DNA of 64,000 bases from Selaginella moellendorffii (Eukaryota > Plantae > Lycopodiophyta): the NCBI RefSeq assembly GCF_000143415.4, contig NW_003314311.1, forward strand, positions 1 through 64,000, in the 5' to 3' direction. Position 1 is the stretch's first letter. The number at the start of each line of letters is the position of its first letter. Shown one piece after another: positions 22,221-64,000 of the stretch. A program made the translations under genes and the position numbers. The notes beneath the pieces are model-generated. The model was given only the letters and a program-made list of their open reading frames with translations. It made no database searches and was not told the origin of the DNA.

Positions 22221-24011
22221 ATGGTGCAAGGTTTGCTTCGACGTGCACTTGGAGCGGTGAAAGACCAGGCCAGTATTGGACTAGCCAGAGTGAGCAGCAG
22301 CAGATCTCGGTATGTTCCAGCTCTGGAAATCGCAATTGTGAAAGCCACTAGCCACGACGAACTGGTGATGGTGGACGACAAGCATATCTTGGAGATAGTC
22401 TACTTGATGTCCTTCTCCAGAGGATACGCCAGCGTCTGCGTCTCTCTACTCGCTAGAAGGCTGAGCAAAACGAAGAACTGGGTGGTGGCTTTGAAGGTCC
22501 TGCTGGTAATTCACAGGTTGCTACTCCAAGACTCGTCAGTGATGGATTCGAGCTTCGACGACGAGTTAATGCTGGCTAGCAGGAGGATGCTCAGCTCCTC
22601 AAGCTTCAAGGACGAATCGAAGGATCCTCTGGCGCAGCTGTGCAGCTCCTTTGTCCGGAACTATGCTCTCTACATCGACGAGTGGCTCGACTGCTTTGTT
22701 CTGGGGGCCGCATCGCAGGATAGTTCCCTTGGCCAGGCTGCGGGGAATATAGTCGTGGACTTCAATGATTATAGAGTGGACTACACGACGTACAAGCAGG
22801 ACGAGCTCGTCCAGCAGCACCAGAAGAGCCAGAGCTCGGTGTCTGAGACCGACGCAGGGATTGGAATGCTGCTCAAGCGAGTTCCTGTGCTCCAACATCT
22901 GCTCGAGCACGTCCTTGGCTGCTCGTCGGGCGTGGAAGTCCGCCATCCTCTGGTGAGGTCGGCTCTCACTTTGATCCTGCGAGACAGCTTCCGGGTCTAC
23001 GCTCACGTCTGCGATGGCACAAGCACGCTGCTAAACGAGTTCTTCCTCATGGTTCACAAGGATGGTCTCAAAACTTTCGCGATTTACAGCCGGCTCGGGA
23101 AGCAGGCTGACGCTCTGGGAGAGTTGTATGAGAACTGCCGGGAGATGGGAATGTGCTCCGGATCGGAGTACCCGTCCGTCCAGAAGGTTTCTCGCGAGCA
23201 TCTGGTCCTACTCGAGGACTACTTGAAGGACGCCACCCGCAGGAACACCGACCAAGTTGATACGGCGAGCAGCGACGGGAAAACAAGCGAAGAAGTTGAC
23301 GAGATAGCTCCAATTGTTCTCGACGGGAAGCCGAAGCAGGACGTGGATCTGATCAGCTTGGAGCAGCAGCAGCAGCAACAGCAGCCTCTTTTCTCGACGG
23401 CTTCCGAGACCGAGAGCTCGTGGGAAACTTTTGCATCGAGCTCGGAAGAGGGTGGAACTCGAGCAAACCAGAAAAGTTCTCCAGCCAGCAGCAGCAGCCC
23501 GGGAAATCTCAAGAGTTCTCCGAAAGCTTCACCAGGAGACGATTCATCAAACGACACGGATGGAAAGTCTCTAGCAGCAACAGCAGCAGCAGCAGCAGTA
23601 GACAATCCAGCCGCGGGAAATCTCAAGACCAACAACTGTGAATCATCCGACTGGGAAGTAGCGCTCATGGACGAAGCCAAGAAGCTCTCGAGCTCTCTCT
23701 CCACGGCTTCCAGAGGGAGGAGCACGAGTTTTAGCCTGAGCGAGTGGCAGCCGGGGAACACTTCGAGGAGCTCAAGCGCTCGCGGCAGGCCGCAGCGAAG
23801 CAGGATTCCTCTTCTCTCCATGTCGGCGTTGCCCGCGCCGTTCGAGCTTGGATCACAGTCGTCGTCCTCGTTCTCCACCGCCAACGAAGATCTCTTTGGA
23901 TCGAAGAAGCGATTCCAGCAGCATCAGAGGATTGGAATTGGGAGCCCCGGATCGTATGGAAAGCTCATGAACAAGCATCCACAGGGATACAAGCACTTGC
24001 TCGCTCGCTAA
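22221..24011 (+). CDS. ANTH-domain clathrin assembly protein (PICALM/AP180-like), intronless
   Basis: RRALGAVKDQASIGLA, IVKATSHD, NWVVALKVLLVIHRLL, then a Ser-rich tail with WE motifs. ATG at 22221. Confidence 0.92.
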   Translation: MVQGLLRRALGAVKDQASIGLARVSSSRSRYVPALEIAIVKATSHDELVMVDDKHILEIVYLMSFSRGYASVCVSLLARRLSKTKNWVVALKVLLVIHRLLLQDSSVMDSSFDDELMLASRRMLSSSSFKDESKDPLAQLCSSFVRNYALYIDEWLDCFVLGAASQDSSLGQAAGNIVVDFNDYRVDYTTYKQDELVQQHQKSQSSVSETDAGIGMLLKRVPVLQHLLEHVLGCSSGVEVRHPLVRSALTLILRDSFRVYAHVCDGTSTLLNEFFLMVHKDGLKTFAIYSRLGKQADALGELYENCREMGMCSGSEYPSVQKVSREHLVLLEDYLKDATRRNTDQVDTASSDGKTSEEVDEIAPIVLDGKPKQDVDLISLEQQQQQQQPLFSTASETESSWETFASSSEEGGTRANQKSSPASSSSPGNLKSSPKASPGDDSSNDTDGKSLAATAAAAAVDNPAAGNLKTNNCESSDWEVALMDEAKKLSSSLSTASRGRSTSFSLSEWQPGNTSRSSSARGRPQRSRIPLLSMSALPAPFELGSQSSSSFSTANEDLFGSKKRFQQHQRIGIGSPGSYGKLMNKHPQGYKHLLAR

Positions 24012-24254
24012 AGAGATAATGTTTCGAATTTGAATTTGAATTAAAATTCAAAACCATGGTACGAATCTTAGAAAGCAGCTGATCAAATATGATGATATCT
24101 CTTTGTTCTCCTCTTTTCTCTTCTTGATTCATGCTTTGCATGATGTTAAGTGATATCTTCTTGCTTGCCCTTTGTTAGATCTTTCACCAACTTTTTTGGA
24201 TTGTATTGTCTTCATTAAAAAACGGTAGATTGTTAAAGAAATTTAAAAATTTTG

Positions 24255-25118
24255 TTAATTTGATTTCCATATACAAGTTTGCAAGATAGTATCAGAAACA
24301 ACAAAATATCCTGCATTTTCAACACAAAGTGCATATGTAACCCATTCATTCTGTGAAGAAAAGTATTTTGACCAAATAAGTTTGTTGTTTAAATCATAAA
24401 TTGCAAGGTTACCATCTTTTTTTAAATAAAGAGTACATCCATTACCCATGTTATTGGTTTTTGTATCCCAAATTACATATAACCCTTTATATAGTACTAA
24501 ATTACAATCATATTGCATATACAAAATATATTGGCGATTTGGAGACTGAAGAAAATTTCCGTTTTTTATATGTGAAAAACTTGAGAAAATTGGTCCACTT
24601 CTTATGCAAACTATATAAATATTACAATCTCTAAAATTCATAGTGAGTGAATTAATAGTTTTATTAGTGGTATATAATTCATCATTATCTACTATATAAG
24701 ATATTAAATATCTCTCAGATATATATTCTGCTAAACCATATGTAACTAAATCATTCATAACATAATTTTTAAAAATATAATAAAATTGATTTTGTAAATA
24801 ATCTCCTTTGAAAATCTTTGATAAATTAACAATTATAGTGCAAGCTATTATACTATCTATATATTGAGTTTGTATATCTAAAGCACTTATAGTCACAATT
24901 AAAGTTTTATCTTTCTCAAATTTTACATGTGATAGTGAAAATCCAACAAATAAATCTTCCTTTTTATCAACATTTTTTATAAGATCAAATATTAAAGGTA
25001 AAATAGTTGTTTGCCTATATTTAATAGAAATAGCTTGTGGATGATCATAATACTTAGTTATACAATTAGAACATACAATTAATAGAAATAGTAAACTAAA
25101 AAATAAAACCATAACCAT
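24255..25118 (-). CDS. Secreted protein: signal peptide + unknown ~150-aa domain + bulb-type (GNA-related) lectin domain
   Basis: Intact 287-aa ORF in very AT-rich DNA with a hydrophobic N-terminus. MQYDCNLVLY is a QxDxNxVxY motif. Full-length paralog at 60597-61451. Confidence 0.85.
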   Translation of the reverse strand: MVMVLFFSLLFLLIVCSNCITKYYDHPQAISIKYRQTTILPLIFDLIKNVDKKEDLFVGFSLSHVKFEKDKTLIVTISALDIQTQYIDSIIACTIIVNLSKIFKGDYLQNQFYYIFKNYVMNDLVTYGLAEYISERYLISYIVDNDELYTTNKTINSLTMNFRDCNIYIVCIRSGPIFSSFSHIKNGNFLQSPNRQYILYMQYDCNLVLYKGLYVIWDTKTNNMGNGCTLYLKKDGNLAIYDLNNKLIWSKYFSSQNEWVTYALCVENAGYFVVSDTILQTCIWKSN

Positions 25119-25393
25119 AAATTATTTTTGTAATTTTGACTACATAGTAGTTTTTAAATCCAATTTTGAAAATAAAATATAGAACCTTTAACATAGAGAA
25201 AATAAAATAAGAAAAAAATCATATAAAATATCAAGAATTTTGTATTTAATGTAAGGAATTTAAACTCCCGGTTAAAAGTTAAACATAGTTAAACAAGCTT
25301 AAAATTCCTTGTTAAAGGAAATTCCATTAGCTAAAATATACTTGAACGTTTTTGACGATAATCTGAGCCGTCAGTGTGAGCATCAGGGTTTTG

Positions 25394-25402
25394 TTTCCCG
25401 CC
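25394..25402 (+). promoter_or_regulatory. E2F binding site upstream of MCM2
   Basis: TTTCCCGCC about 60 bp before the ATG. MCM genes are established E2F targets. Confidence 0.7.
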
Positions 25403-25462
25403 ATTTCTTCTCTTGCTCCCGTCTAGGTCGCGCGAGGCGGGCGGATTTCGTGGTGTTCTGCG

Positions 25463-29089
<3,627 letters not shown>

Positions 29090-37640: not shown

Positions 37641-37773
37641 ATCTTGTAGAATCAAATTGTATGTTCAAAGGCTTGGAAGGCATGATTCCCAATGAGAGTA
37701 GCTTTATTGGGCTGTTTCAAGAATGCAACCATTTGGGGATGATAGATGAAACTTGTCACTACTTTGCAAATAT
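37641..37773 (+). pseudogene. Inverted decayed fragment of a PPR gene
   Basis: LEGMIPNESSFIGLFQECNHLGMIDETCHYFA aligns at DNA level with ~32782-32921 (minus strand). Confidence 0.85.
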
Positions 37774-38696
37774 GTATGAAATACATCACTACACTTCTAA
37801 AGGAGTATAATGCTAGAATAGAAGGTGGAGAGTATATAGTTGCCATTCAAGAATTTTTTTTATTTTTCATTAGGCACAAAAAATGTGGAAATATATATGT
37901 TCCTTACAAGCACATGTACTCTATCTTCATCAAACACCTTACACTAGGATTCAAAAGTGGGCATTTATATACACTAGGCAAATCTAGTTACAAAATATTT
38001 TGGGAGTTAACTAGATTTGCCAAGACTATTGATGTTAATCCTATCAATAATATAAAAATTTTATTTTATATAATTAATAAAAGACATACTTTTCATTTTA
38101 AGACAAACACTGTTGTATTTACAAAAGGAAACAAGAAGAAATAACAAAATTATAAATGACAAAAAAATGCAATGTAGCAAAGCTTAGCCTGCTTTAGTTT
38201 TTTATATGTTTTCTAAGCTCTTTTATAACTTATCACATCTTTTGTCTCTTTACCATCTCAAAAAATATTTCATAGTAATTTTTCATAGGCATGATGGTGG
38301 CAATAAAATCTAGAGTGTGTAGTAATCTTTAAATTGGCCTATTAGCTGTTATATACACACCTTCTTTGCACTATAGTCAATATATAACTGGAAAGCTAGC
38401 GAGATACTTATATATCAAGTTCTCCTATTGGAGGAATGTCAAAGATATTTAAAATATTATTGCATTGCAAAATCTTGTTTAACTTTAATTAGATAAAATC
38501 ATGAGGGTACTACTTGATAACAATAAGAATGATTGGAAAAATGGGTGTAATTTTGTTTATAAGCCCTTTCTCTCAATATATAGCTTTATAAATTGTTTTT
38601 TTAATTATTCTTTTTAATTGCTTATAATCCACCACATTTTTTTTGTAAATTCACACCCTCTTAAACAGAAATTAAGAGTTGTAACTCTTTTGAGAG

Positions 38697-39988: not shown

Positions 39989-41383
39989 ATTATCTTTTAA
40001 GTCGTTCTCTTTGGTTGCTTACACAAGTTAAATGTTCTTGAATTTAAGTAATACTAGGCTAAATGACCTCCCAAAAAATTTAAATTCAAAAGCTTATAAT
40101 GTCCCCTACCATTATTTGCACAAACACTTTAAATGCTACTAGAACTCTACCTTGATAAAATGGCATTACTAGTTTAGGCTTTGAGTGTAATGAAACTCCT
40201 ATCACAACCTTCCAAGAGTTGAACATTCCCAAAACTAGCATAAATACTATTTTAGTTTGCCCCAACCCCATCTAATAGAAAAACAAAGAAGAAAATTGTC
40301 AAGCTTACTAATCCACTTTAGCACAATGTTAGGAAAAGACTTCCAAAATATTTCTTAAGCTGCCTTGTTTTGTACTTTGAACTCTAATTATTAAGTTGCA
40401 ACATAATATGTGAGAAAGGCAATGTTTAAAACCATTTTAACATAGTGAAAAAGAAAAAATTACCTTTAATATATATATGAACTTCCATAGTCAAAATGTA
40501 TCCATATATTCATATACATTCATTTGGGAAACAAAATCTACACTATAGGTAAAGCCCATCATCTTGATGAGGAAGGGGCACTCATACTCATTAAAAATTT
40601 GGTCTAAAAACAATTTCCTACAGATGAACTTGTTCATATAGGTTAGTATTAGTTCAAGGATGGAATTGATAATATTATTGTAAAATTTAAAATACTATAT
40701 GTATACTTTTTGAGGCTAATAGCAAGTTGTGCACCTTGTGATAAATCCAGCATGGTCTTTTAAACATGCTTTGGAATTGAAGATGAGTTCTCACAATCTT
40801 TAAATCTTACAATATTTTTAAACAATTGATTAAACTCTTTTGTATCTCTTCTTCTAGTGGGTGTGCATGTGGAAACATGTATTATGGCTCTGCCAGCCAC
40901 TCTGTCCCAAATATAGCACACATGGTTTTGACTTATACTCTATGGTGAATTACTATAAGATAACCCTAATCACTATTAATATATAAATATTTTCATAATT
41001 ACTTTCTTTATTTATATGTTTAATTTTATTAACGAAAGAAATATTATAATAGAATATATACTGTTTAGAATTTAGTCTCCCAAAGTAACTTTTTCCCTCT
41101 TGGATGGTGAAATATTACATAAGAGCTAGAGGTGTTATATTTTTCTTCTTTAGATAATAAAAATGGATCCAAAATAAAAGAAAGATTATATAAATGTTAT
41201 TGAGGTTTTTAAGTTTTTGTCAAATGGCAAACACACATCTTCTATTTTTATTACATATTTTAATTTTAATACATTTTTATTATTTACATTCATATAAATT
41301 ATTCTAATTCTTTTTTTTTATAAGGTATAGAAATATTTAAACTATTTTATAATTTTTATATTCTACATATTTGAAGTCATTTG

Positions 41384-42257
41384 TTATGCTATAGTCAAAT
41401 CATCATTATAGTAGATAAGAATAACTGGAACATAAAAGTAAGCTGGCAATCCTGAGCCAAGATACTCGTAAATCAGCTTCTCCTTAATTGGAGGAGGGAA
41501 CTCATCAATGTCAGAAATATCTGGAACACCATTGCATTGCAAAGTCTTGTTTAAATCCAACTGGATAAACTCATGAGCGTCACTCAAGCTCACTGCTCGA
41601 CAAGAGTAGCTATCTGCATGACTGTTGTAATCTTTGTAGCGATCTAGAATCTGGCCCACAGTTTCTTCGCAAGGAACCTATAAAGTGTTATCTCCTAAGA
41701 TCTTGGAAAGTGAAAAAGAGTTCTTCCTTTTCCATACCTCTAGAAGGATGTCTTGGTTGATGAGAACGTTCTTCACTCGAATGCACCGAGTTCTTTTGCT
41801 TAGTTTGCCAATCATGTACTTGGGATCGTTCCACCACTCAAACTCAAACGATGAATCCCAGTCTGTTCTAGGAGCGCGTGGAGGGACGTGAACAAATCTC
41901 CCCTGCCAAGACCAAATTTTGCTCGATCGATAAACTCTTCACGATTTCTTTTAGAACTTCCAATAAACTTTGATGAATTTGTACCTCCGGCGTGTGGAAG
42001 AGCTCCTGCTTGGAAACCGGATCAATGTGGCGTTTGACGCTTCCAGTGCTGGGATCAAACCAGTGACTGATATCGCCTCCTCCGGCGTGGATCAAGAGCT
42101 TGCCAAGAAACGCTGGATTGCGAGTGACGAGATTGGTGACATCGTAGACCGATCCGAGCAGCGTGATCCAGCAATCGCCAGGAGTGCAGTGCTGCTTGAC
42201 CTCAGTGGCCGTGTACCAGCCGCTCTTGCGCTTGGGCGTCGTGGGGATCATCGCCAT
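41384..42257 (-). CDS. CYB5D1: Cytochrome b5 domain-containing protein 1 (ciliary radial-spoke-type), 3 exons
   Basis: HCTPGDCW...GDISHWFD, GRFVHVPP..PRTDW, IGKLSKRTR, YNSHADSY, C-terminal YYNDDLTIA. Confidence 0.92.
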
Positions 42258-58389: not shown

Positions 58390-60034
58390 TTCTTGCTCTA
58401 GATCGGGGAGAACTAATAGAGGAGACTTGGAGGAATCATCATTTGAGCTCCACAAAGCCTTCTATGCAGATTCTTCCCACGAAAAGGTACCAGTCCTGAT
58501 AATGTTTGAGTGGAGCTGCTACCGATGTGAAGTGCCAAATGAAGTAGTGGAGATAATTGGCAAACCTGACAAATGCTTGAAGCTGCTTCAATGACTACCA
58601 ATCTTCTACCACCAAAAGCTTGTTTAGATTTGGGAAAACTTGTCCATGAGAAACTCAAAATCCCAACTACTCAAATTTTTGTATACCAAAGCTGCATTTA
58701 GATAGTTTACTAACCATCCTATTCTCCTCTAATGTGGAGAATACACATAAATGCCATATCTTGTCTTTCTTGAGGACTAACAACTTTGGTGTGGCGAATG
58801 GGCTGTTGCTAAGCTCGATAAGGTTCTACTCCAATAGCTCCACCATCATTCAATCTATAGTATCATGTTCCTCCTTTGTCAACCAAAATAAAGGCCTACA
58901 AACAGGGCTGGTCAGCTTGATTGTGTGCTTCATACTGGTCTTCTCACTAACCATGGGTGCCACTTACAACTTAAAGACAGCTTTGTAGTGTAAGAGGACA
59001 TTCACGATCTCGTCCACCAATCCCATCTCTCAGATCCTATGGATTTGCTTCATTGGTTGCCAAAGTTGACATTGCTGTCTTGTTGTTGTTCCAAGCTTCA
59101 GGTCCACTCTTGAAACTTTCATCTATCTTTGGCCCCGTCATACTTCTCCAGCGGGATCTGATCTTGCCATCTTCCCCAGCAATTAGTCATATACCTCCAG
59201 CATCAATGGGAGTTCTTCCCAACATTCCTTCCCCTTTCCTGTTAACCCCGACTCCTCGCATCTTCTTGATTAAGCCCTCATACCACTCTGTGCTGTCCAC
59301 TAGAGGGAGTGGGACTAAGGAAGAGTCATGTAACCGGTCATGATTTGTCAATCGGCAAACTAGGCCCCATTGATCCTGGTTCATTTGGCTTGAATGCATC
59401 CTCCCCTCCAAGAGCTCCTGGCACTCCTGGAGTTGTTCTTGCTGCTCCCCCAATCGCTGCAGCACCTGATCCAGATGTTGCAAAGAAAGCTGTGCAGATG
59501 CGTACTGCTCACTTCCCTGCTTTTGATCAGACAAGTACAGCTGCATGAACGAACGGAGGGCATTCTTGATGTTTGTCAACATCTCAGTCGAAACTAGTGG
59601 CGATGGGGCTGACGAGTTTGTAGTCTCACCTTTTGTCTCTGGGTAGATCTCACTGTCTTCTTGCCATGCCATGGCAAAGCCCTGGCGCCATTCTCTTCAC
59701 CTACGAGCTCCCAAGCGAACCAAGAACACGAACAAACCCTAGGGATACCGTGAAAGGAAGAGAAGTGCCAATTGAATGGTTCTCACTGTTATGCCCCTAG
59801 AAACTTCATGAAATGTCACTATCCAAATCGTGCAAATTGGCAGTCTGGCTAGAGAATTGGTGCTCCAATACCACTGTTGCATTCCTCCATCATTTTATAG
59901 ATCTCTAAGCATTCCTTAAAGGGAAAAGGAATAGGGGTGGAAGGAAAAGAAAAGAAATCAAGGAAGGGGAGAAGAAGATCCAAAATTATAACCTGCCCGT
60001 ACACACTTACCTTATATCACTCCCGTGTTTATCA
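58390..60034 (-). mobile_element. Truncated, internally deleted Ty3/gypsy element
   Basis: Putative LTR at 59875-60034, PBS TGGTATTGGAGC (59862-59873), gag-like ORF 59187-59672, RT remnants SNSPFATPKLLVLKKDK, KLSKCSFG and FANYLHYFI. Confidence 0.75.
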
Positions 60035-60596
60035 TATGGAGACTGACTAAAATAAGCGTCAAATTCCTATGGAGACTGACTAAAATAAGCGTCAAATTCC
60101 TAGACTCATGAGTCGGAAACCTTTATTTTTATAGATAAGTTATTTCATAAACTGTGATCTTGATTATTTTAAGCTGAAGTTGAAGTCAATCATAGTTTCT
60201 ATTTTGGAAGTTTTAAAATACTATTCAAGCTTTCTAGTGTTTGAATAACAAATAGTAGTAATTGATGGCACTAATAGAAAAAACTATTTCTGATATGAAC
60301 AATTTAGTTTTCAAGCACCTTTCATAGTTTATTTAATTAAATTATAAAAATTTATATTTTTAAAAACAATGACATTAATATTAATAACCACCTCTGTAAA
60401 ATAGTATGATAATAAATTTTGTTTATAAAATAGCTAATCATGAAAAATTAAACTAGTTTATTAATATCTTTACAGTTTTCTTATCATTTTGCTATGAGTT
60501 TTATATAGTTTCAATATTGCATAATGTTTTCCTTTTTCAAATAATCAACATAACTATTCGAAATTAATAGAATAAAGTACTCTTACAGATAGTAGA

Positions 60597-61451
60597 ATGA
60601 TTATATCTATTTATTATTTATTTTTATTTTTATCTTATTGTCATTGTATAACTAAGTATTATGATAAACCACAAGCTATTTCTGTTCATTACAGACATTA
60701 TACTATTTTACCTCTAATTTACAAACTTATTGAAGATGTTGGTAAAAGAGAAAATTTATATCTTGGCTTTTCACTATCTAAAGTGAAATTTGAAAAACAA
60801 AAGACTTTAATAATAACTATAACTGTTCTTGATATACAAGTTGAATATAAAAATTTAGTAGCTTGTACTATTATTGCTAGCCTATCAAAGGTGTATAAAG
60901 GATTTCGTATTCAAAACCGATTGCTTAAAATTTATCAAGATTATATTGTTAATGATGGAGTTACCTATGGTTCAGCTGAATATATAGATGAGAGATACTC
61001 AATATCCTACACTTTAGAAAGTGATGAATTATATGACACAAAGAGTATATATAAAACTTATTTTGAAATTGGAAATTTTAAAGATTGTAATATTTATATA
61101 GTATGCATAAGAAATAGACCATTCTTTTCATATTTAGAAAATGGAGCTTTTCTTCAATCTCCAAATCGTTTATATATTTTATATATGCAGATTGACTGTA
61201 ATTTAGTTCTTTATAATGGGTTGTCCATAATTTGGGAAACAAAAACTAATAATATGGGTGAGGGATGTTTTCTTAGATTACAAAAAAATGGAAATCTTGT
61301 AATTTATGATAAAAATTACAGAGAGATCTTAGTATATCATTTAAAGAAACAAGATAAATGGGTTACATATGCATTATGTGTTGAAAATGAAGGATATCTT
61401 GCTATTTATAATACAAATTTGCAAATTTGTGTATGGAAATCAAATTATTAA
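60597..61451 (+). CDS. Secreted protein: signal peptide + unknown domain + bulb-type lectin (paralog of 24255-25118)
   Basis: Intact 284-aa ORF with MQIDCNLVLY. Aligns end to end with the first copy. Confidence 0.85.
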   Translation: MIISIYYLFLFLSYCHCITKYYDKPQAISVHYRHYTILPLIYKLIEDVGKRENLYLGFSLSKVKFEKQKTLIITITVLDIQVEYKNLVACTIIASLSKVYKGFRIQNRLLKIYQDYIVNDGVTYGSAEYIDERYSISYTLESDELYDTKSIYKTYFEIGNFKDCNIYIVCIRNRPFFSYLENGAFLQSPNRLYILYMQIDCNLVLYNGLSIIWETKTNNMGEGCFLRLQKNGNLVIYDKNYREILVYHLKKQDKWVTYALCVENEGYLAIYNTNLQICVWKSNY

Positions 61452-61707
61452 ACTTCTTTAACATTAAGATAATTCACCATGATTATTTTTAAATAAACTA
61501 TTTTATATTTTTAGCTAATAAAAAACAGGGAAAATTACATTACTAAAACTTTACAAAAAAACAAATTTGCCTTTAGAATTTTTAAAATTATAGTTTTGAT
61601 TCTACAAAGCTAGAAAACTACCCTTACTCAACCTTCAACTAAAATAATCTAAAATATTCTATTTAATTTGGGGCAAATGGGATTAAGGATTAGGGCTAAT
61701 TGATGTG

Positions 61708-62231
61708 NNNNNNNNNNNNNNNNNNNNNNNNNNNNNNNNNNNNNNNNNNNNNNNNNNNNNNNNNNNNNNNNNNNNNNNNNNNNNNNNNNNNNNNNNNNNN
61801 NNNNNNNNNNNNNNNNNNNNNNNNNNNNNNNNNNNNNNNNNNNNNNNNNNNNNNNNNNNNNNNNNNNNNNNNNNNNNNNNNNNNNNNNNNNNNNNNNNNN
61901 NNNNNNNNNNNNNNNNNNNNNNNNNNNNNNNNNNNNNNNNNNNNNNNNNNNNNNNNNNNNNNNNNNNNNNNNNNNNNNNNNNNNNNNNNNNNNNNNNNNN
62001 NNNNNNNNNNNNNNNNNNNNNNNNNNNNNNNNNNNNNNNNNNNNNNNNNNNNNNNNNNNNNNNNNNNNNNNNNNNNNNNNNNNNNNNNNNNNNNNNNNNN
62101 NNNNNNNNNNNNNNNNNNNNNNNNNNNNNNNNNNNNNNNNNNNNNNNNNNNNNNNNNNNNNNNNNNNNNNNNNNNNNNNNNNNNNNNNNNNNNNNNNNNN
62201 NNNNNNNNNNNNNNNNNNNNNNNNNNNNNNN
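61708..62231. other. Assembly gap
   Basis: Run of N. Confidence 1.
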
Positions 62232-64000
62232 NTTTGAAAAGGTACATTGTAGCTGTAAGAGTCAGGGTGCCCTTGGGAAGCTTCACACATCTATTTAGAA
62301 GGGAGGGTTAGCTTGTTTGATTCAAACTTTCATCAATGTTATTAATGTGAGGAGCAAGGGGGCAAGGCATACATTTGGGGAACAAAAAAGTTAGTTCCAA
62401 TATGGATTGCTAATGGTTTTCAGCAAACCTTGGTAGAAGAATTAGGATTTAACATGAAAAACACAAGTAGGTATGTTAGATGGGAAGATGGTGTTAATAT
62501 ACTATATATAAGACCTTAGAGGGGGAAATAGAAAATAATTAAAGAGATTCCTATGAATCAGGTAGAGCTTTATGCAAAGCTCTCCATGTACTGTAAGAAG
62601 CTTTTGGAGAGCAATCTCAAGAGTAAAGTATTCATGGAAAGAGATTGATTGTATCAAATAGTTATTTGTTGCTTTTAAAGTATTCTTAATTGGTTTCTCA
62701 TGTTATAAACTTTTGGTTGAACTCATCTCAAGGGCCACTTCTAAGACTACTTATTGAGTGCTAGTGTTGAAAGGAGCATTATATCCTTTAGCATTTAGCA
62801 AGTGGTTTTTTTTGCTTATGAACAAAGCAATCAATAATAAATGTAGTATGATATTCCTTTCTGATCTGTAGAAAGGTGTTGTTGATATGTAATACAAGTG
62901 GAACATGGTTAACAAAGTTGATGACTTAATTCTTCAAGCAATGAAGTTTGGGATGATATTAGTGATATGACTTCCACTAGTTTAGTGAAGCTTAGATTTG
63001 TGAAGTATGAAGTCGTGATTGCTTAATTCTACACCCATCCTTGCTACTCACTTGAGGCTTATTGTGGCACATATAGGTCTTTTGTTCTGGAGGGCTTGTG
63101 CAAGAATAATACACAACCATTAAAAATCCTCTTAGTTAACTAAGGAAAAAATGTGTATGAACATAATACATTGGTTATGATAAAAAGGGCTTTCCATTGT
63201 GGATGATGTCATTACATTAGACATAGCAGATGAACTTGTTAGTAGCTAATTTAATTAGTTTATTTTGTTTTTCTTTCTATTTTATTTGTTATTCTCTTGA
63301 ATATATGTTAATAAGTAGAATATTCTAGAATATTTTAGTTGAAGAGTGTTAAAAGGTTGAGTAAGGGTTTTGTTTTGTAATATGTAAAATTTTGTAGTGG
63401 CAAAATTGTAAATTTGGAAATTTAGGACTAAATTTTGGTTGGTCATGGAGCTAGCTGAAATATGTTCTTTATTGAGCATTATTTAAGGGTTTTAAAATCT
63501 TTGGTAAAGAAAAATTTGAAGAATCTATAGCTGAAGGTTTGCTATTAAGAGAGAGTTTTTTATATATATAATATTTTAGTGCTAATTTGGTTACTAGTAT
63601 TCCATAGTTTATATCTCTATTTGATTATAGTAGCATTCAATTGCAGCATTTAGGAAAATAAATTCAACTTAGTTTAGAAGAGCATGAAAATATTTCTCTA
63701 TATATTTTGTAGCACATGTGCTTTTCACTTTTTATCATATAGTGATTTACCATAAGATAACCACAAAGCAAAACCTAAACTCTTTAGGTGCCATGTATCA
63801 CATGACACATGCCACATGCCATGTGTTCAATGATAGTAGAGCAAAACTCAAGTTTCAAAGCCTTAAATGAAAGAACAAAGTTAAACTCTTAATTTTGTAA
63901 CCAAGGGGTTAAGGAACCAAAATATAGAGCAACTCAAGAGCGTTATGCCCAAGGAGCAAAGGGATAGGAGCATAGAGTGACATAAGAATAGTCATAGAGC

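Follow-up and report, generated by a model that had tools for sequence, protein, structure and literature searches.

Introduction

Among the proteins with which plants defend themselves, GNA-type lectins form a main class, and the closest solved relative of the proteins described here, gastrodianin, is an antifungal lectin. In this work we have investigated a 64,000-nucleotide stretch of the genome of the lycophyte Selaginella moellendorffii (contig NW_003314311.1, positions 1 to 64,000; hereafter the window) and two genes within it, gene A (24255..25118, minus strand) and its paralogue gene B (60597..61451, plus strand). Both encode a predicted secreted protein in which an N-terminal domain of about 158 amino acids, the N-domain, precedes a GNA-type lectin domain. 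The coding sequences (CDSs) of A and B have been kept by purifying selection over their long divergence, and that of A also relative to its flanks on two haplotypes. We lean, without great confidence, towards the explanation that A and B are old paralogues of a lineage-specific, selectively maintained and unannotated spikemoss family of secreted chimerolectins, residing in silent, CpG-depleted DNA, for which a lectin-aimed role in defence would be proposed.

Several described systems come close to this architecture. Gastrodianin (GAFP-1; 1xd5) and snowdrop agglutinin (1jpc/1msa) align with the C-terminal ~108 amino acids of A and B across the whole lectin repeat (E 8e-17 to 1e-10). GNA lectins have in common with A and B a QxDCNLVLY site, the cysteine pair of the GNA disulfide and, likewise, predicted secretion. 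Unlike them, A and B have one canonical site of three, two extra cysteines, an orphan domain of ~158 amino acids at the N-terminal side, an extreme AT content and a Pfam score below the gathering threshold. The lectin-like bacteriocins (LlpA, pyocin L1 and putidacin L1), in which a B-lectin aims a killing protein at a surface glycan, are also among the Protein Data Bank (PDB) matches (E 6e-11 to 4e-6); they are bacterial tandem B-lectins without a separate non-lectin domain, whereas the N-domain of A and B is not a decayed B-lectin. Type-2 ribosome-inactivating proteins (RIPs), which join an A chain to a ricin-B lectin, follow the same plan of signal peptide, non-lectin domain and sugar-binding domain with disulfide stabilization. 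The resemblance is one of plan only: judged by lectin family, the A/B lectin would be a beta-prism II and not a beta-trefoil, and the N-domain carries no RIP or other enzyme signature. Finally, the cysteine-rich Gnk2/DUF26 proteins and the KP4 killer toxin are alpha+beta domains, small and secreted, which in plants and fungi act against fungi or bind glycans; compared with them, the N-domain has no sequence match, lacks the defining cysteine motif and is about 50% longer. Surveys of the domain partners of GNA-type lectins rest on annotated proteomes (PMC5485960, PMC6362431), and the architecture of A and B is missing from these. No description of such genes was found in the literature that we searched.

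Results

Gene A is a complete single-exon CDS of 287 amino acids plus stop, and gene B one of 284 amino acids plus stop. The A protein starts with a signal-peptide-like segment (residues 1-19; 25062..25118, minus strand), read from the translation as a hydrophobic run followed by C-S-N-C, with a putative cleavage site. It continues with the N-domain (residues 20-178; 24585..25061, minus strand), delimited by database searches and the A/B alignment and containing four conserved cysteines, and ends with the GNA-type (B-lectin) domain (residues 179-287; 24258..24584, minus strand), placed by Pfam and PDB matches. In gene B the N-domain comprises residues 18-177 (60648..61127, plus strand; A/B alignment) and the lectin domain lies at 61128..61448 (plus strand; translation, BLASTP and Pfam). 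A hydrophobic segment of 15-17 residues opens each open reading frame (ORF), and therefore we regard A and B as complete single-exon genes; an in-frame TAA stands two codons 5' of the gene A ATG. Chance cannot account for ORF A being open, because with a stop probability of 0.092 per random codon at its composition the probability of 287 open codons is about 9e-13, and the other five frames contain 13-34 stops each. The two proteins share 168 of 287 residues in BLASTP (59% identity, 75% positives) with three in-frame gaps, and all eight cysteines which follow the signal peptide are conserved. At the nucleotide level the copies are 74% identical. This similarity is confined to 25066-24240 and 60643-61465, so that it sets in immediately behind the signal-peptide segment and runs to 15 nt beyond the stop, and the flanks of A and B are unalignable.

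The C-terminal part of both proteins is, by its sequence, a GNA-type lectin. Residues ~183-279 match 35 PDB chains, which are GNA-type lectins, with gastrodianin (1xd5) as the best (E 8e-17, phmmer), followed by curculin, the snowdrop and garlic agglutinins and pyocin L. The Pfam B_lectin family (PF01453) is matched by A with 24.2 bits (E 5e-5) and by B with 23.4 bits (E 9e-5). Each copy contains one canonical QxDxNxVxY mannose-site motif, QYDCNLVLY in A (24489..24515, minus strand; from the translation and the gastrodianin alignment) and QIDCNLVLY in B (61188-61214, plus strand; from the translation). The second repeat is altered, to KKDGNLAIY in A and to the near-canonical QKNGNLVIY in B, and the motif of the third is degenerate or lost in both. 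Both cysteines of the GNA disulfide are kept in the lectin domain, together with two further conserved cysteines.

The N-domain, in contrast to the lectin, is an orphan as far as sequence comparison reaches. Its conserved cysteines stand at positions 19, 93, 165 and 172 of A, of which just the last two lie close together (C-X6-C), and its best-conserved blocks are CITKYYDxPQAIS (right behind the signal peptide), GFSLSxVKFEKxKTLI and DCNIYIVCIR. Residues 20-178 of gene A gave no Pfam match at E <= 1, and the N-domain had no match in NCBIfam and chance-level matches only in PHROGs (E >= 0.1). When about 15 billion proteins, condensed to 1.84 billion representatives, were searched with a profile, nothing matched at E <= 1e-3. 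No relative emerged from viral, metagenome and prokaryote contigs scanned by pattern plus tblastn, and a protein-language-model atlas contained no usable match for the N-domain of either copy. AlphaFold2 models were built of the N-domain from a two-sequence alignment (pLDDT, the predicted local distance difference test score, 36) and of the mature protein from three sequences, namely A, its allele and B (mean pLDDT 31). In mature numbering both weak models have a helix at ~22-35, strands at ~41-51, 55-64 and 73-82, a second helix at ~88-103 and a strand at ~148-156, which suggests an alpha+beta domain to which no fold is assigned.

Three candidate relationships of the N-domain were rejected. 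The only PDB profile matches were fusion glycoproteins of pneumoviruses, over ~100 residues (N-domain residues ~77-178; window 24585-24890) with E-values of 0.028 and 0.24 (0.5-3.7 per stretch); we judged them to be chance, since both sequences are rich in I, N, K and L. Descent from a decayed B-lectin repeat was ruled out by an hhalign probability of 0.1%. The third candidate, a CBM_14 match in gene B (E 0.011), spans just 16 residues over the CNIYIVC motif and is too short and below threshold.

A first-pass annotation of this DNA, made from its letters, had proposed the two ORFs, a paralogue identity of ~55-60%, the location of gene A between the ANTH and MCM2 genes and an AT content visibly above that of the neighbours. 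Coordinates and strands proved correct, the identity is the 59% given above with all gaps in frame and eight cysteines conserved, the neighbouring genes carry these two Pfam matches (precomputed), and the GC content is 24% compared with 55% for ANTH. Its further proposals, a GNA-related B-lectin at the C-terminus and an N-domain of no recognizable family, agree with the E-value of 8e-17 to gastrodianin and with the empty searches of Pfam, NCBIfam, PHROGs, PDB and the 1.84 billion representatives; the N-domain was not placed in any known lectin-fusion family.

Have these reading frames been maintained by selection? Pairwise maximum likelihood (ML; GY94, F3x4) of A against B gave an omega (dN/dS, the ratio of non-synonymous to synonymous substitution rates) of 0.21, with dN 0.27, dS 1.3 and kappa 2.7, and a likelihood-ratio test statistic of 49 against omega = 1. 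Taken separately, the N-domain (omega 0.19) and the lectin (0.21) are equally constrained. The Nei-Gojobori estimate of dN/dS is 0.51; the method is not reliable for DNA of this composition, whose synonymous sites are near-saturated within an A/T alphabet. When neutral change was simulated, just 1.9% of ORFs had remained open once divergence reached 5%, and fewer than 0.1% by 10-13%. The purifying selection which the first-pass annotation had deduced from two diverged, open frames is thus upheld by ML. That annotation had also named a dN/dS near 1 together with absent transcripts as the outcome that would speak against it; omega is 0.2 and not 1, and transcripts of gene A were indeed absent from three RNA-seq runs.

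The genome sequence offers a second comparison. The window is scaffold GL377615.1 of GCA_000143415.2, which we take to be the v1 assembly of S. moellendorffii with both haplotypes included. Gene A fills a gap of 1.35 kb between the housekeeping genes MCM2 and ANTH, and it is found again on the second haplotype scaffold, GL377574.1, flanked by the same two genes; contamination or a local misjoin is therefore excluded. The two alleles of gene A differ at 11 of 864 nt (1.3%) without any indel and both are open. Between the haplotypes there are 10 differing sites and one indel over 272 nt of the AT-rich 5' flank, and 5 differing sites and four gap openings over the 125 nt of the 3' flank that can be aligned. 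The flanks thus differ by 3.7-4%, and the CDS has 3-fold fewer differences than the 5' flank (Fisher p = 0.017). This comparison is modest evidence, and the sole evidence, that constraint acts within the plant and not only in a hypothetical donor. GL377574.1 has an N-gap directly downstream of gene A, which confines the comparison of the 3' flank to about 125 nt.

Both genes are unannotated, since neither full-length protein was found in a collection of 5.8 billion proteins and the sole recorded product at the gene A locus is a fragment of 83 amino acids inside the lectin domain (window 24285-24533). Word-index protein searches matched only the 83-residue fragment itself and three tandem B-lectins, which come from metagenomes or Logan; beyond this fragment they found no annotated family member. 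The 83-residue gene model has neither the true start nor the true stop, and the 287-residue ORF is unannotated on both haplotype scaffolds.

The composition of both genes is extreme. GC content is 23.6% in A and 24.2% in B, GC at third codon positions is 13%, and 91-93% of four-fold degenerate sites are A or T; by comparison, the ANTH ORF has 55% GC, the MCM2 exons 47-60% and the MCM2 introns 43%. Gene A lies in an AT-rich, CpG-depleted island (24040..25390, no strand; 25% GC, CpG observed/expected 0.38), and the surroundings of gene B are AT-rich as well (60100..61707, no strand; 22-24% GC), up to an assembly gap (N run 61708-62232). Within the CDSs the CpG observed/expected ratio falls to 0.17 (A) and 0.25 (B), and TpG/CpA is in excess (1.1-1.3). 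Such a pattern is classically left behind by cytosine methylation and deamination. AT-rich non-coding DNA elsewhere in the window has ratios of 0.14 (40201-41600) and 0.03 (62401-63900), and ANTH has 0.90. Because CpG depletion is the same in the other AT-rich DNA of the window, these values suggest that mutation has shaped both islands in the way it shapes silent DNA of the genome itself, which would be enough to explain their AT content without a foreign donor.

A search of the window found no terminal repeats, target-site duplications, shared flanks or genes of transposable elements (TEs) or viruses around either island. As a TE trace we considered a direct repeat of 25 nt that lies close to either end of the B region; its copies are only 72% alike in AT-rich DNA, and we did not find it convincing. 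Exactly at the boundary between normal GC content and the AT-rich DNA of gene B, a 33-nt unit is tandemly duplicated (60032-60097, perfect to 97%). Part of this repeat has a 72% look-alike past gene B, at 61638-61662, probably by chance.

Expression of gene A was followed in three stranded RNA-seq runs of sporophyte RNA from one study, of which about 12% each was read, over region 22600-26600. In these runs ANTH was covered 3-36x up to about 24070 and MCM2 2-20x starting near 25414, the reads confirming five GT..AG introns; gene A is silent, a statement which holds for those samples only. Two small public runs from the same sample (X1/X2, library kind unrecorded) contain contigs of 466 nt and 179 nt identical to the interior of gene A (24343-24988, 645 nt of CDS, depth 2) and nothing from the genes which flank it. 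They consist of short contigs plus one of 18.7 kb, and for this reason they are probably a low-coverage DNA skim, which we did not count as expression; if they were RNA, they would be the sole sign of gene A expression.

Discussion

What could a protein of this plan do? By analogy with the antifungal gastrodianin, type-2 RIPs and the lectin-like bacteriocins, the most likely mechanism would be that of a lectin-aimed effector in defence; the first-pass annotation, too, had thought of an effector or toxin module targeted by the lectin. The protein would enter the secretory pathway and form about four disulfides. Its lectin domain would then anchor it to mannose-type glycans on a target, perhaps a fungal or oomycete wall or a glycoprotein of a herbivore's gut, and the N-domain would supply a second activity, which may be toxic, inhibitory or a second binding specificity. 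A and B would thus be chimerolectins with the order of N-terminal effector and C-terminal lectin seen in type-2 RIPs. CpG depletion and silence suggest TE-like methylation, and expression may be limited to a condition or stage outside the sampled ones.

A number of points weigh against this explanation. The Pfam B_lectin scores of A and B, 24.2 and 23.4 bits, are under the gathering threshold of 32.4 bits, lowered by AT-driven residue bias and by the divergence of repeats two and three. Of the three sugar sites a single one is canonical. Both structural models (pLDDT 36 and 31) are too poor to confirm either the beta-prism II of the lectin or the fold of the N-domain. Not a single read of either strand fell on 24208-25279 in the three RNA-seq runs, and coverage was nil over 24074-25279, against 5-35x on ANTH and MCM2. 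The allelic changes in the CDS comprise 8 non-synonymous nucleotides (in 7 codons) and 3 synonymous ones, a ratio (pN/pS) of about 0.65 which with n = 11 is indistinguishable from neutrality. Lastly, secretion, which is predicted, glycan binding and toxic or defensive activity of A and B are properties which we infer.

Could A and B instead be foreign or selfish relics? In that case each would be independently inserted cargo of an endogenized virus or TE, their low omega would reflect selection in the donor, and they would now be silent and drifting. Their composition is extreme for the Selaginella genome, the flanks of A and B are unrelated, no RNA was seen on gene A, and the allelic pN/pS of about 0.65 cannot be told from 1. 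Maumus et al. (2014) give the same caveat for the Selaginella genes resembling those of nucleocytoplasmic large DNA viruses (PMC4083422). However, neither copy adjoins terminal repeats, target-site duplications or TE or viral genes, and neither the 1.84e9 proteins nor the viral, metagenome and prokaryote contigs scanned by pattern yielded a relative. A giant virus as the source is likewise without a relative in viral contigs; in the study of giant-virus footprints in Selaginella only an exoribonuclease family is clearly viral and lectins are not mentioned (PMC4083422). The CpG depletion is that of other AT-rich DNA in the window. Between haplotypes the CDS, free of indels, is 3-fold less diverged than the AT-rich DNA on either side of it, a sign of constraint acting within the plant. 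Moreover, four ORFs (the two copies and the second allele of A) would have to be open merely by luck, at about 9% stops per random codon. We hold this origin to be very unlikely, and the foreign or TE-associated source raised by the first-pass annotation gained no support, on the same grounds: no bracketing repeats or TE or viral genes, no relatives in the viral, metagenome and prokaryote collections, and a CpG signature shared with other AT-rich non-coding DNA of the window.

A different view accepts A and B as host genes under selection and assigns them a role outside defence. They might be lectins of a reproductive or developmental stage, acting in the spore or gametophyte wall or in self-glycan recognition, or storage-type lectins, with an N-domain that is structural or a second carbohydrate-binding module. 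The silence of gene A in the sampled sporophyte RNA fits stage-limited expression, the N-domain is at least as well conserved as the lectin, and long-term purifying selection with an omega of 0.2 is unlike the diversifying pattern common in arms-race proteins. On the other hand, the best solved match is an antifungal lectin, gastrodianin, and multi-copy, lineage-specific, secreted lectin chimeras stabilized by cysteines are generally held to be typical of defence (PMC5485960). We think a role outside defence unlikely. A further question concerns the fold alone and is compatible with the defence chimerolectin that we favour: the N-domain may be a cysteine-poor alpha+beta sandwich of the Gnk2 (DUF26)/KP4 kind, which would make the protein a double carbohydrate-binding or antifungal module. 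Both weak models have the same order of helix, three strands, helix and late strand and present no conflict with a small alpha+beta sandwich, and DUF26, a secreted plant domain which Selaginella also has, is related in structure to lectins of fungi (PMC6368629). Yet there is no match to Pfam Stress-antifung (PF01657) or KP4 (PF09044) at E <= 1 and no PDB sequence match beyond the chance-level viral F proteins. The DUF26 motif C-X8-C-X2-C is missing, the N-domain having the pattern C...C...C-X6-C, and its length of about 158 amino acids compares with about 100-110 for Gnk2 and KP4. Such a fold seems to us improbable, to much the same degree as a role outside defence.

A bolder version of the secreted chimerolectin can be imagined, in which the N-domain is a new fold or toxin module restricted to spikemosses. 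A and B would then stand for a class of lectin-aimed (AB-type) defence proteins that has not been described so far; their genes would stay in methylated, AT-decayed chromatin and be released only upon attack or at one stage of life. We offer this tentatively and consider it somewhat unlikely. If it were true, selected genes would persist at near-equilibrium AT content in silent DNA, escaping all annotation, and an active N-domain would be a new effector module which carries its own targeting domain. More generally, should A and B be under selection and at the same time reside in silent, CpG-depleted DNA, they would illustrate how functional genes of an early vascular plant can slip past gene finders and composition filters.

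Other features of the window

At about 16 sites of ANTH and MCM2 within 22619-26544 a second base was present in roughly 30-60% of the reads in all three RNA-seq runs, which fits expression of these housekeeping genes from both haplotypes. At 37746-38144 (plus strand, 27% GC) an ORF runs for 132 amino acids from ATG to stop, which is longer than expected where about 9% of random codons are stops. It shows neither a Pfam match nor a signal peptide, and may be a further hidden gene or what remains of a TE. A different ORF, at 41868-42257 (minus strand), borders an AT-rich stretch; it encodes a cytochrome b5-like haem-binding domain (Pfam E 3.7e-9) and is probably one exon of an ordinary gene.
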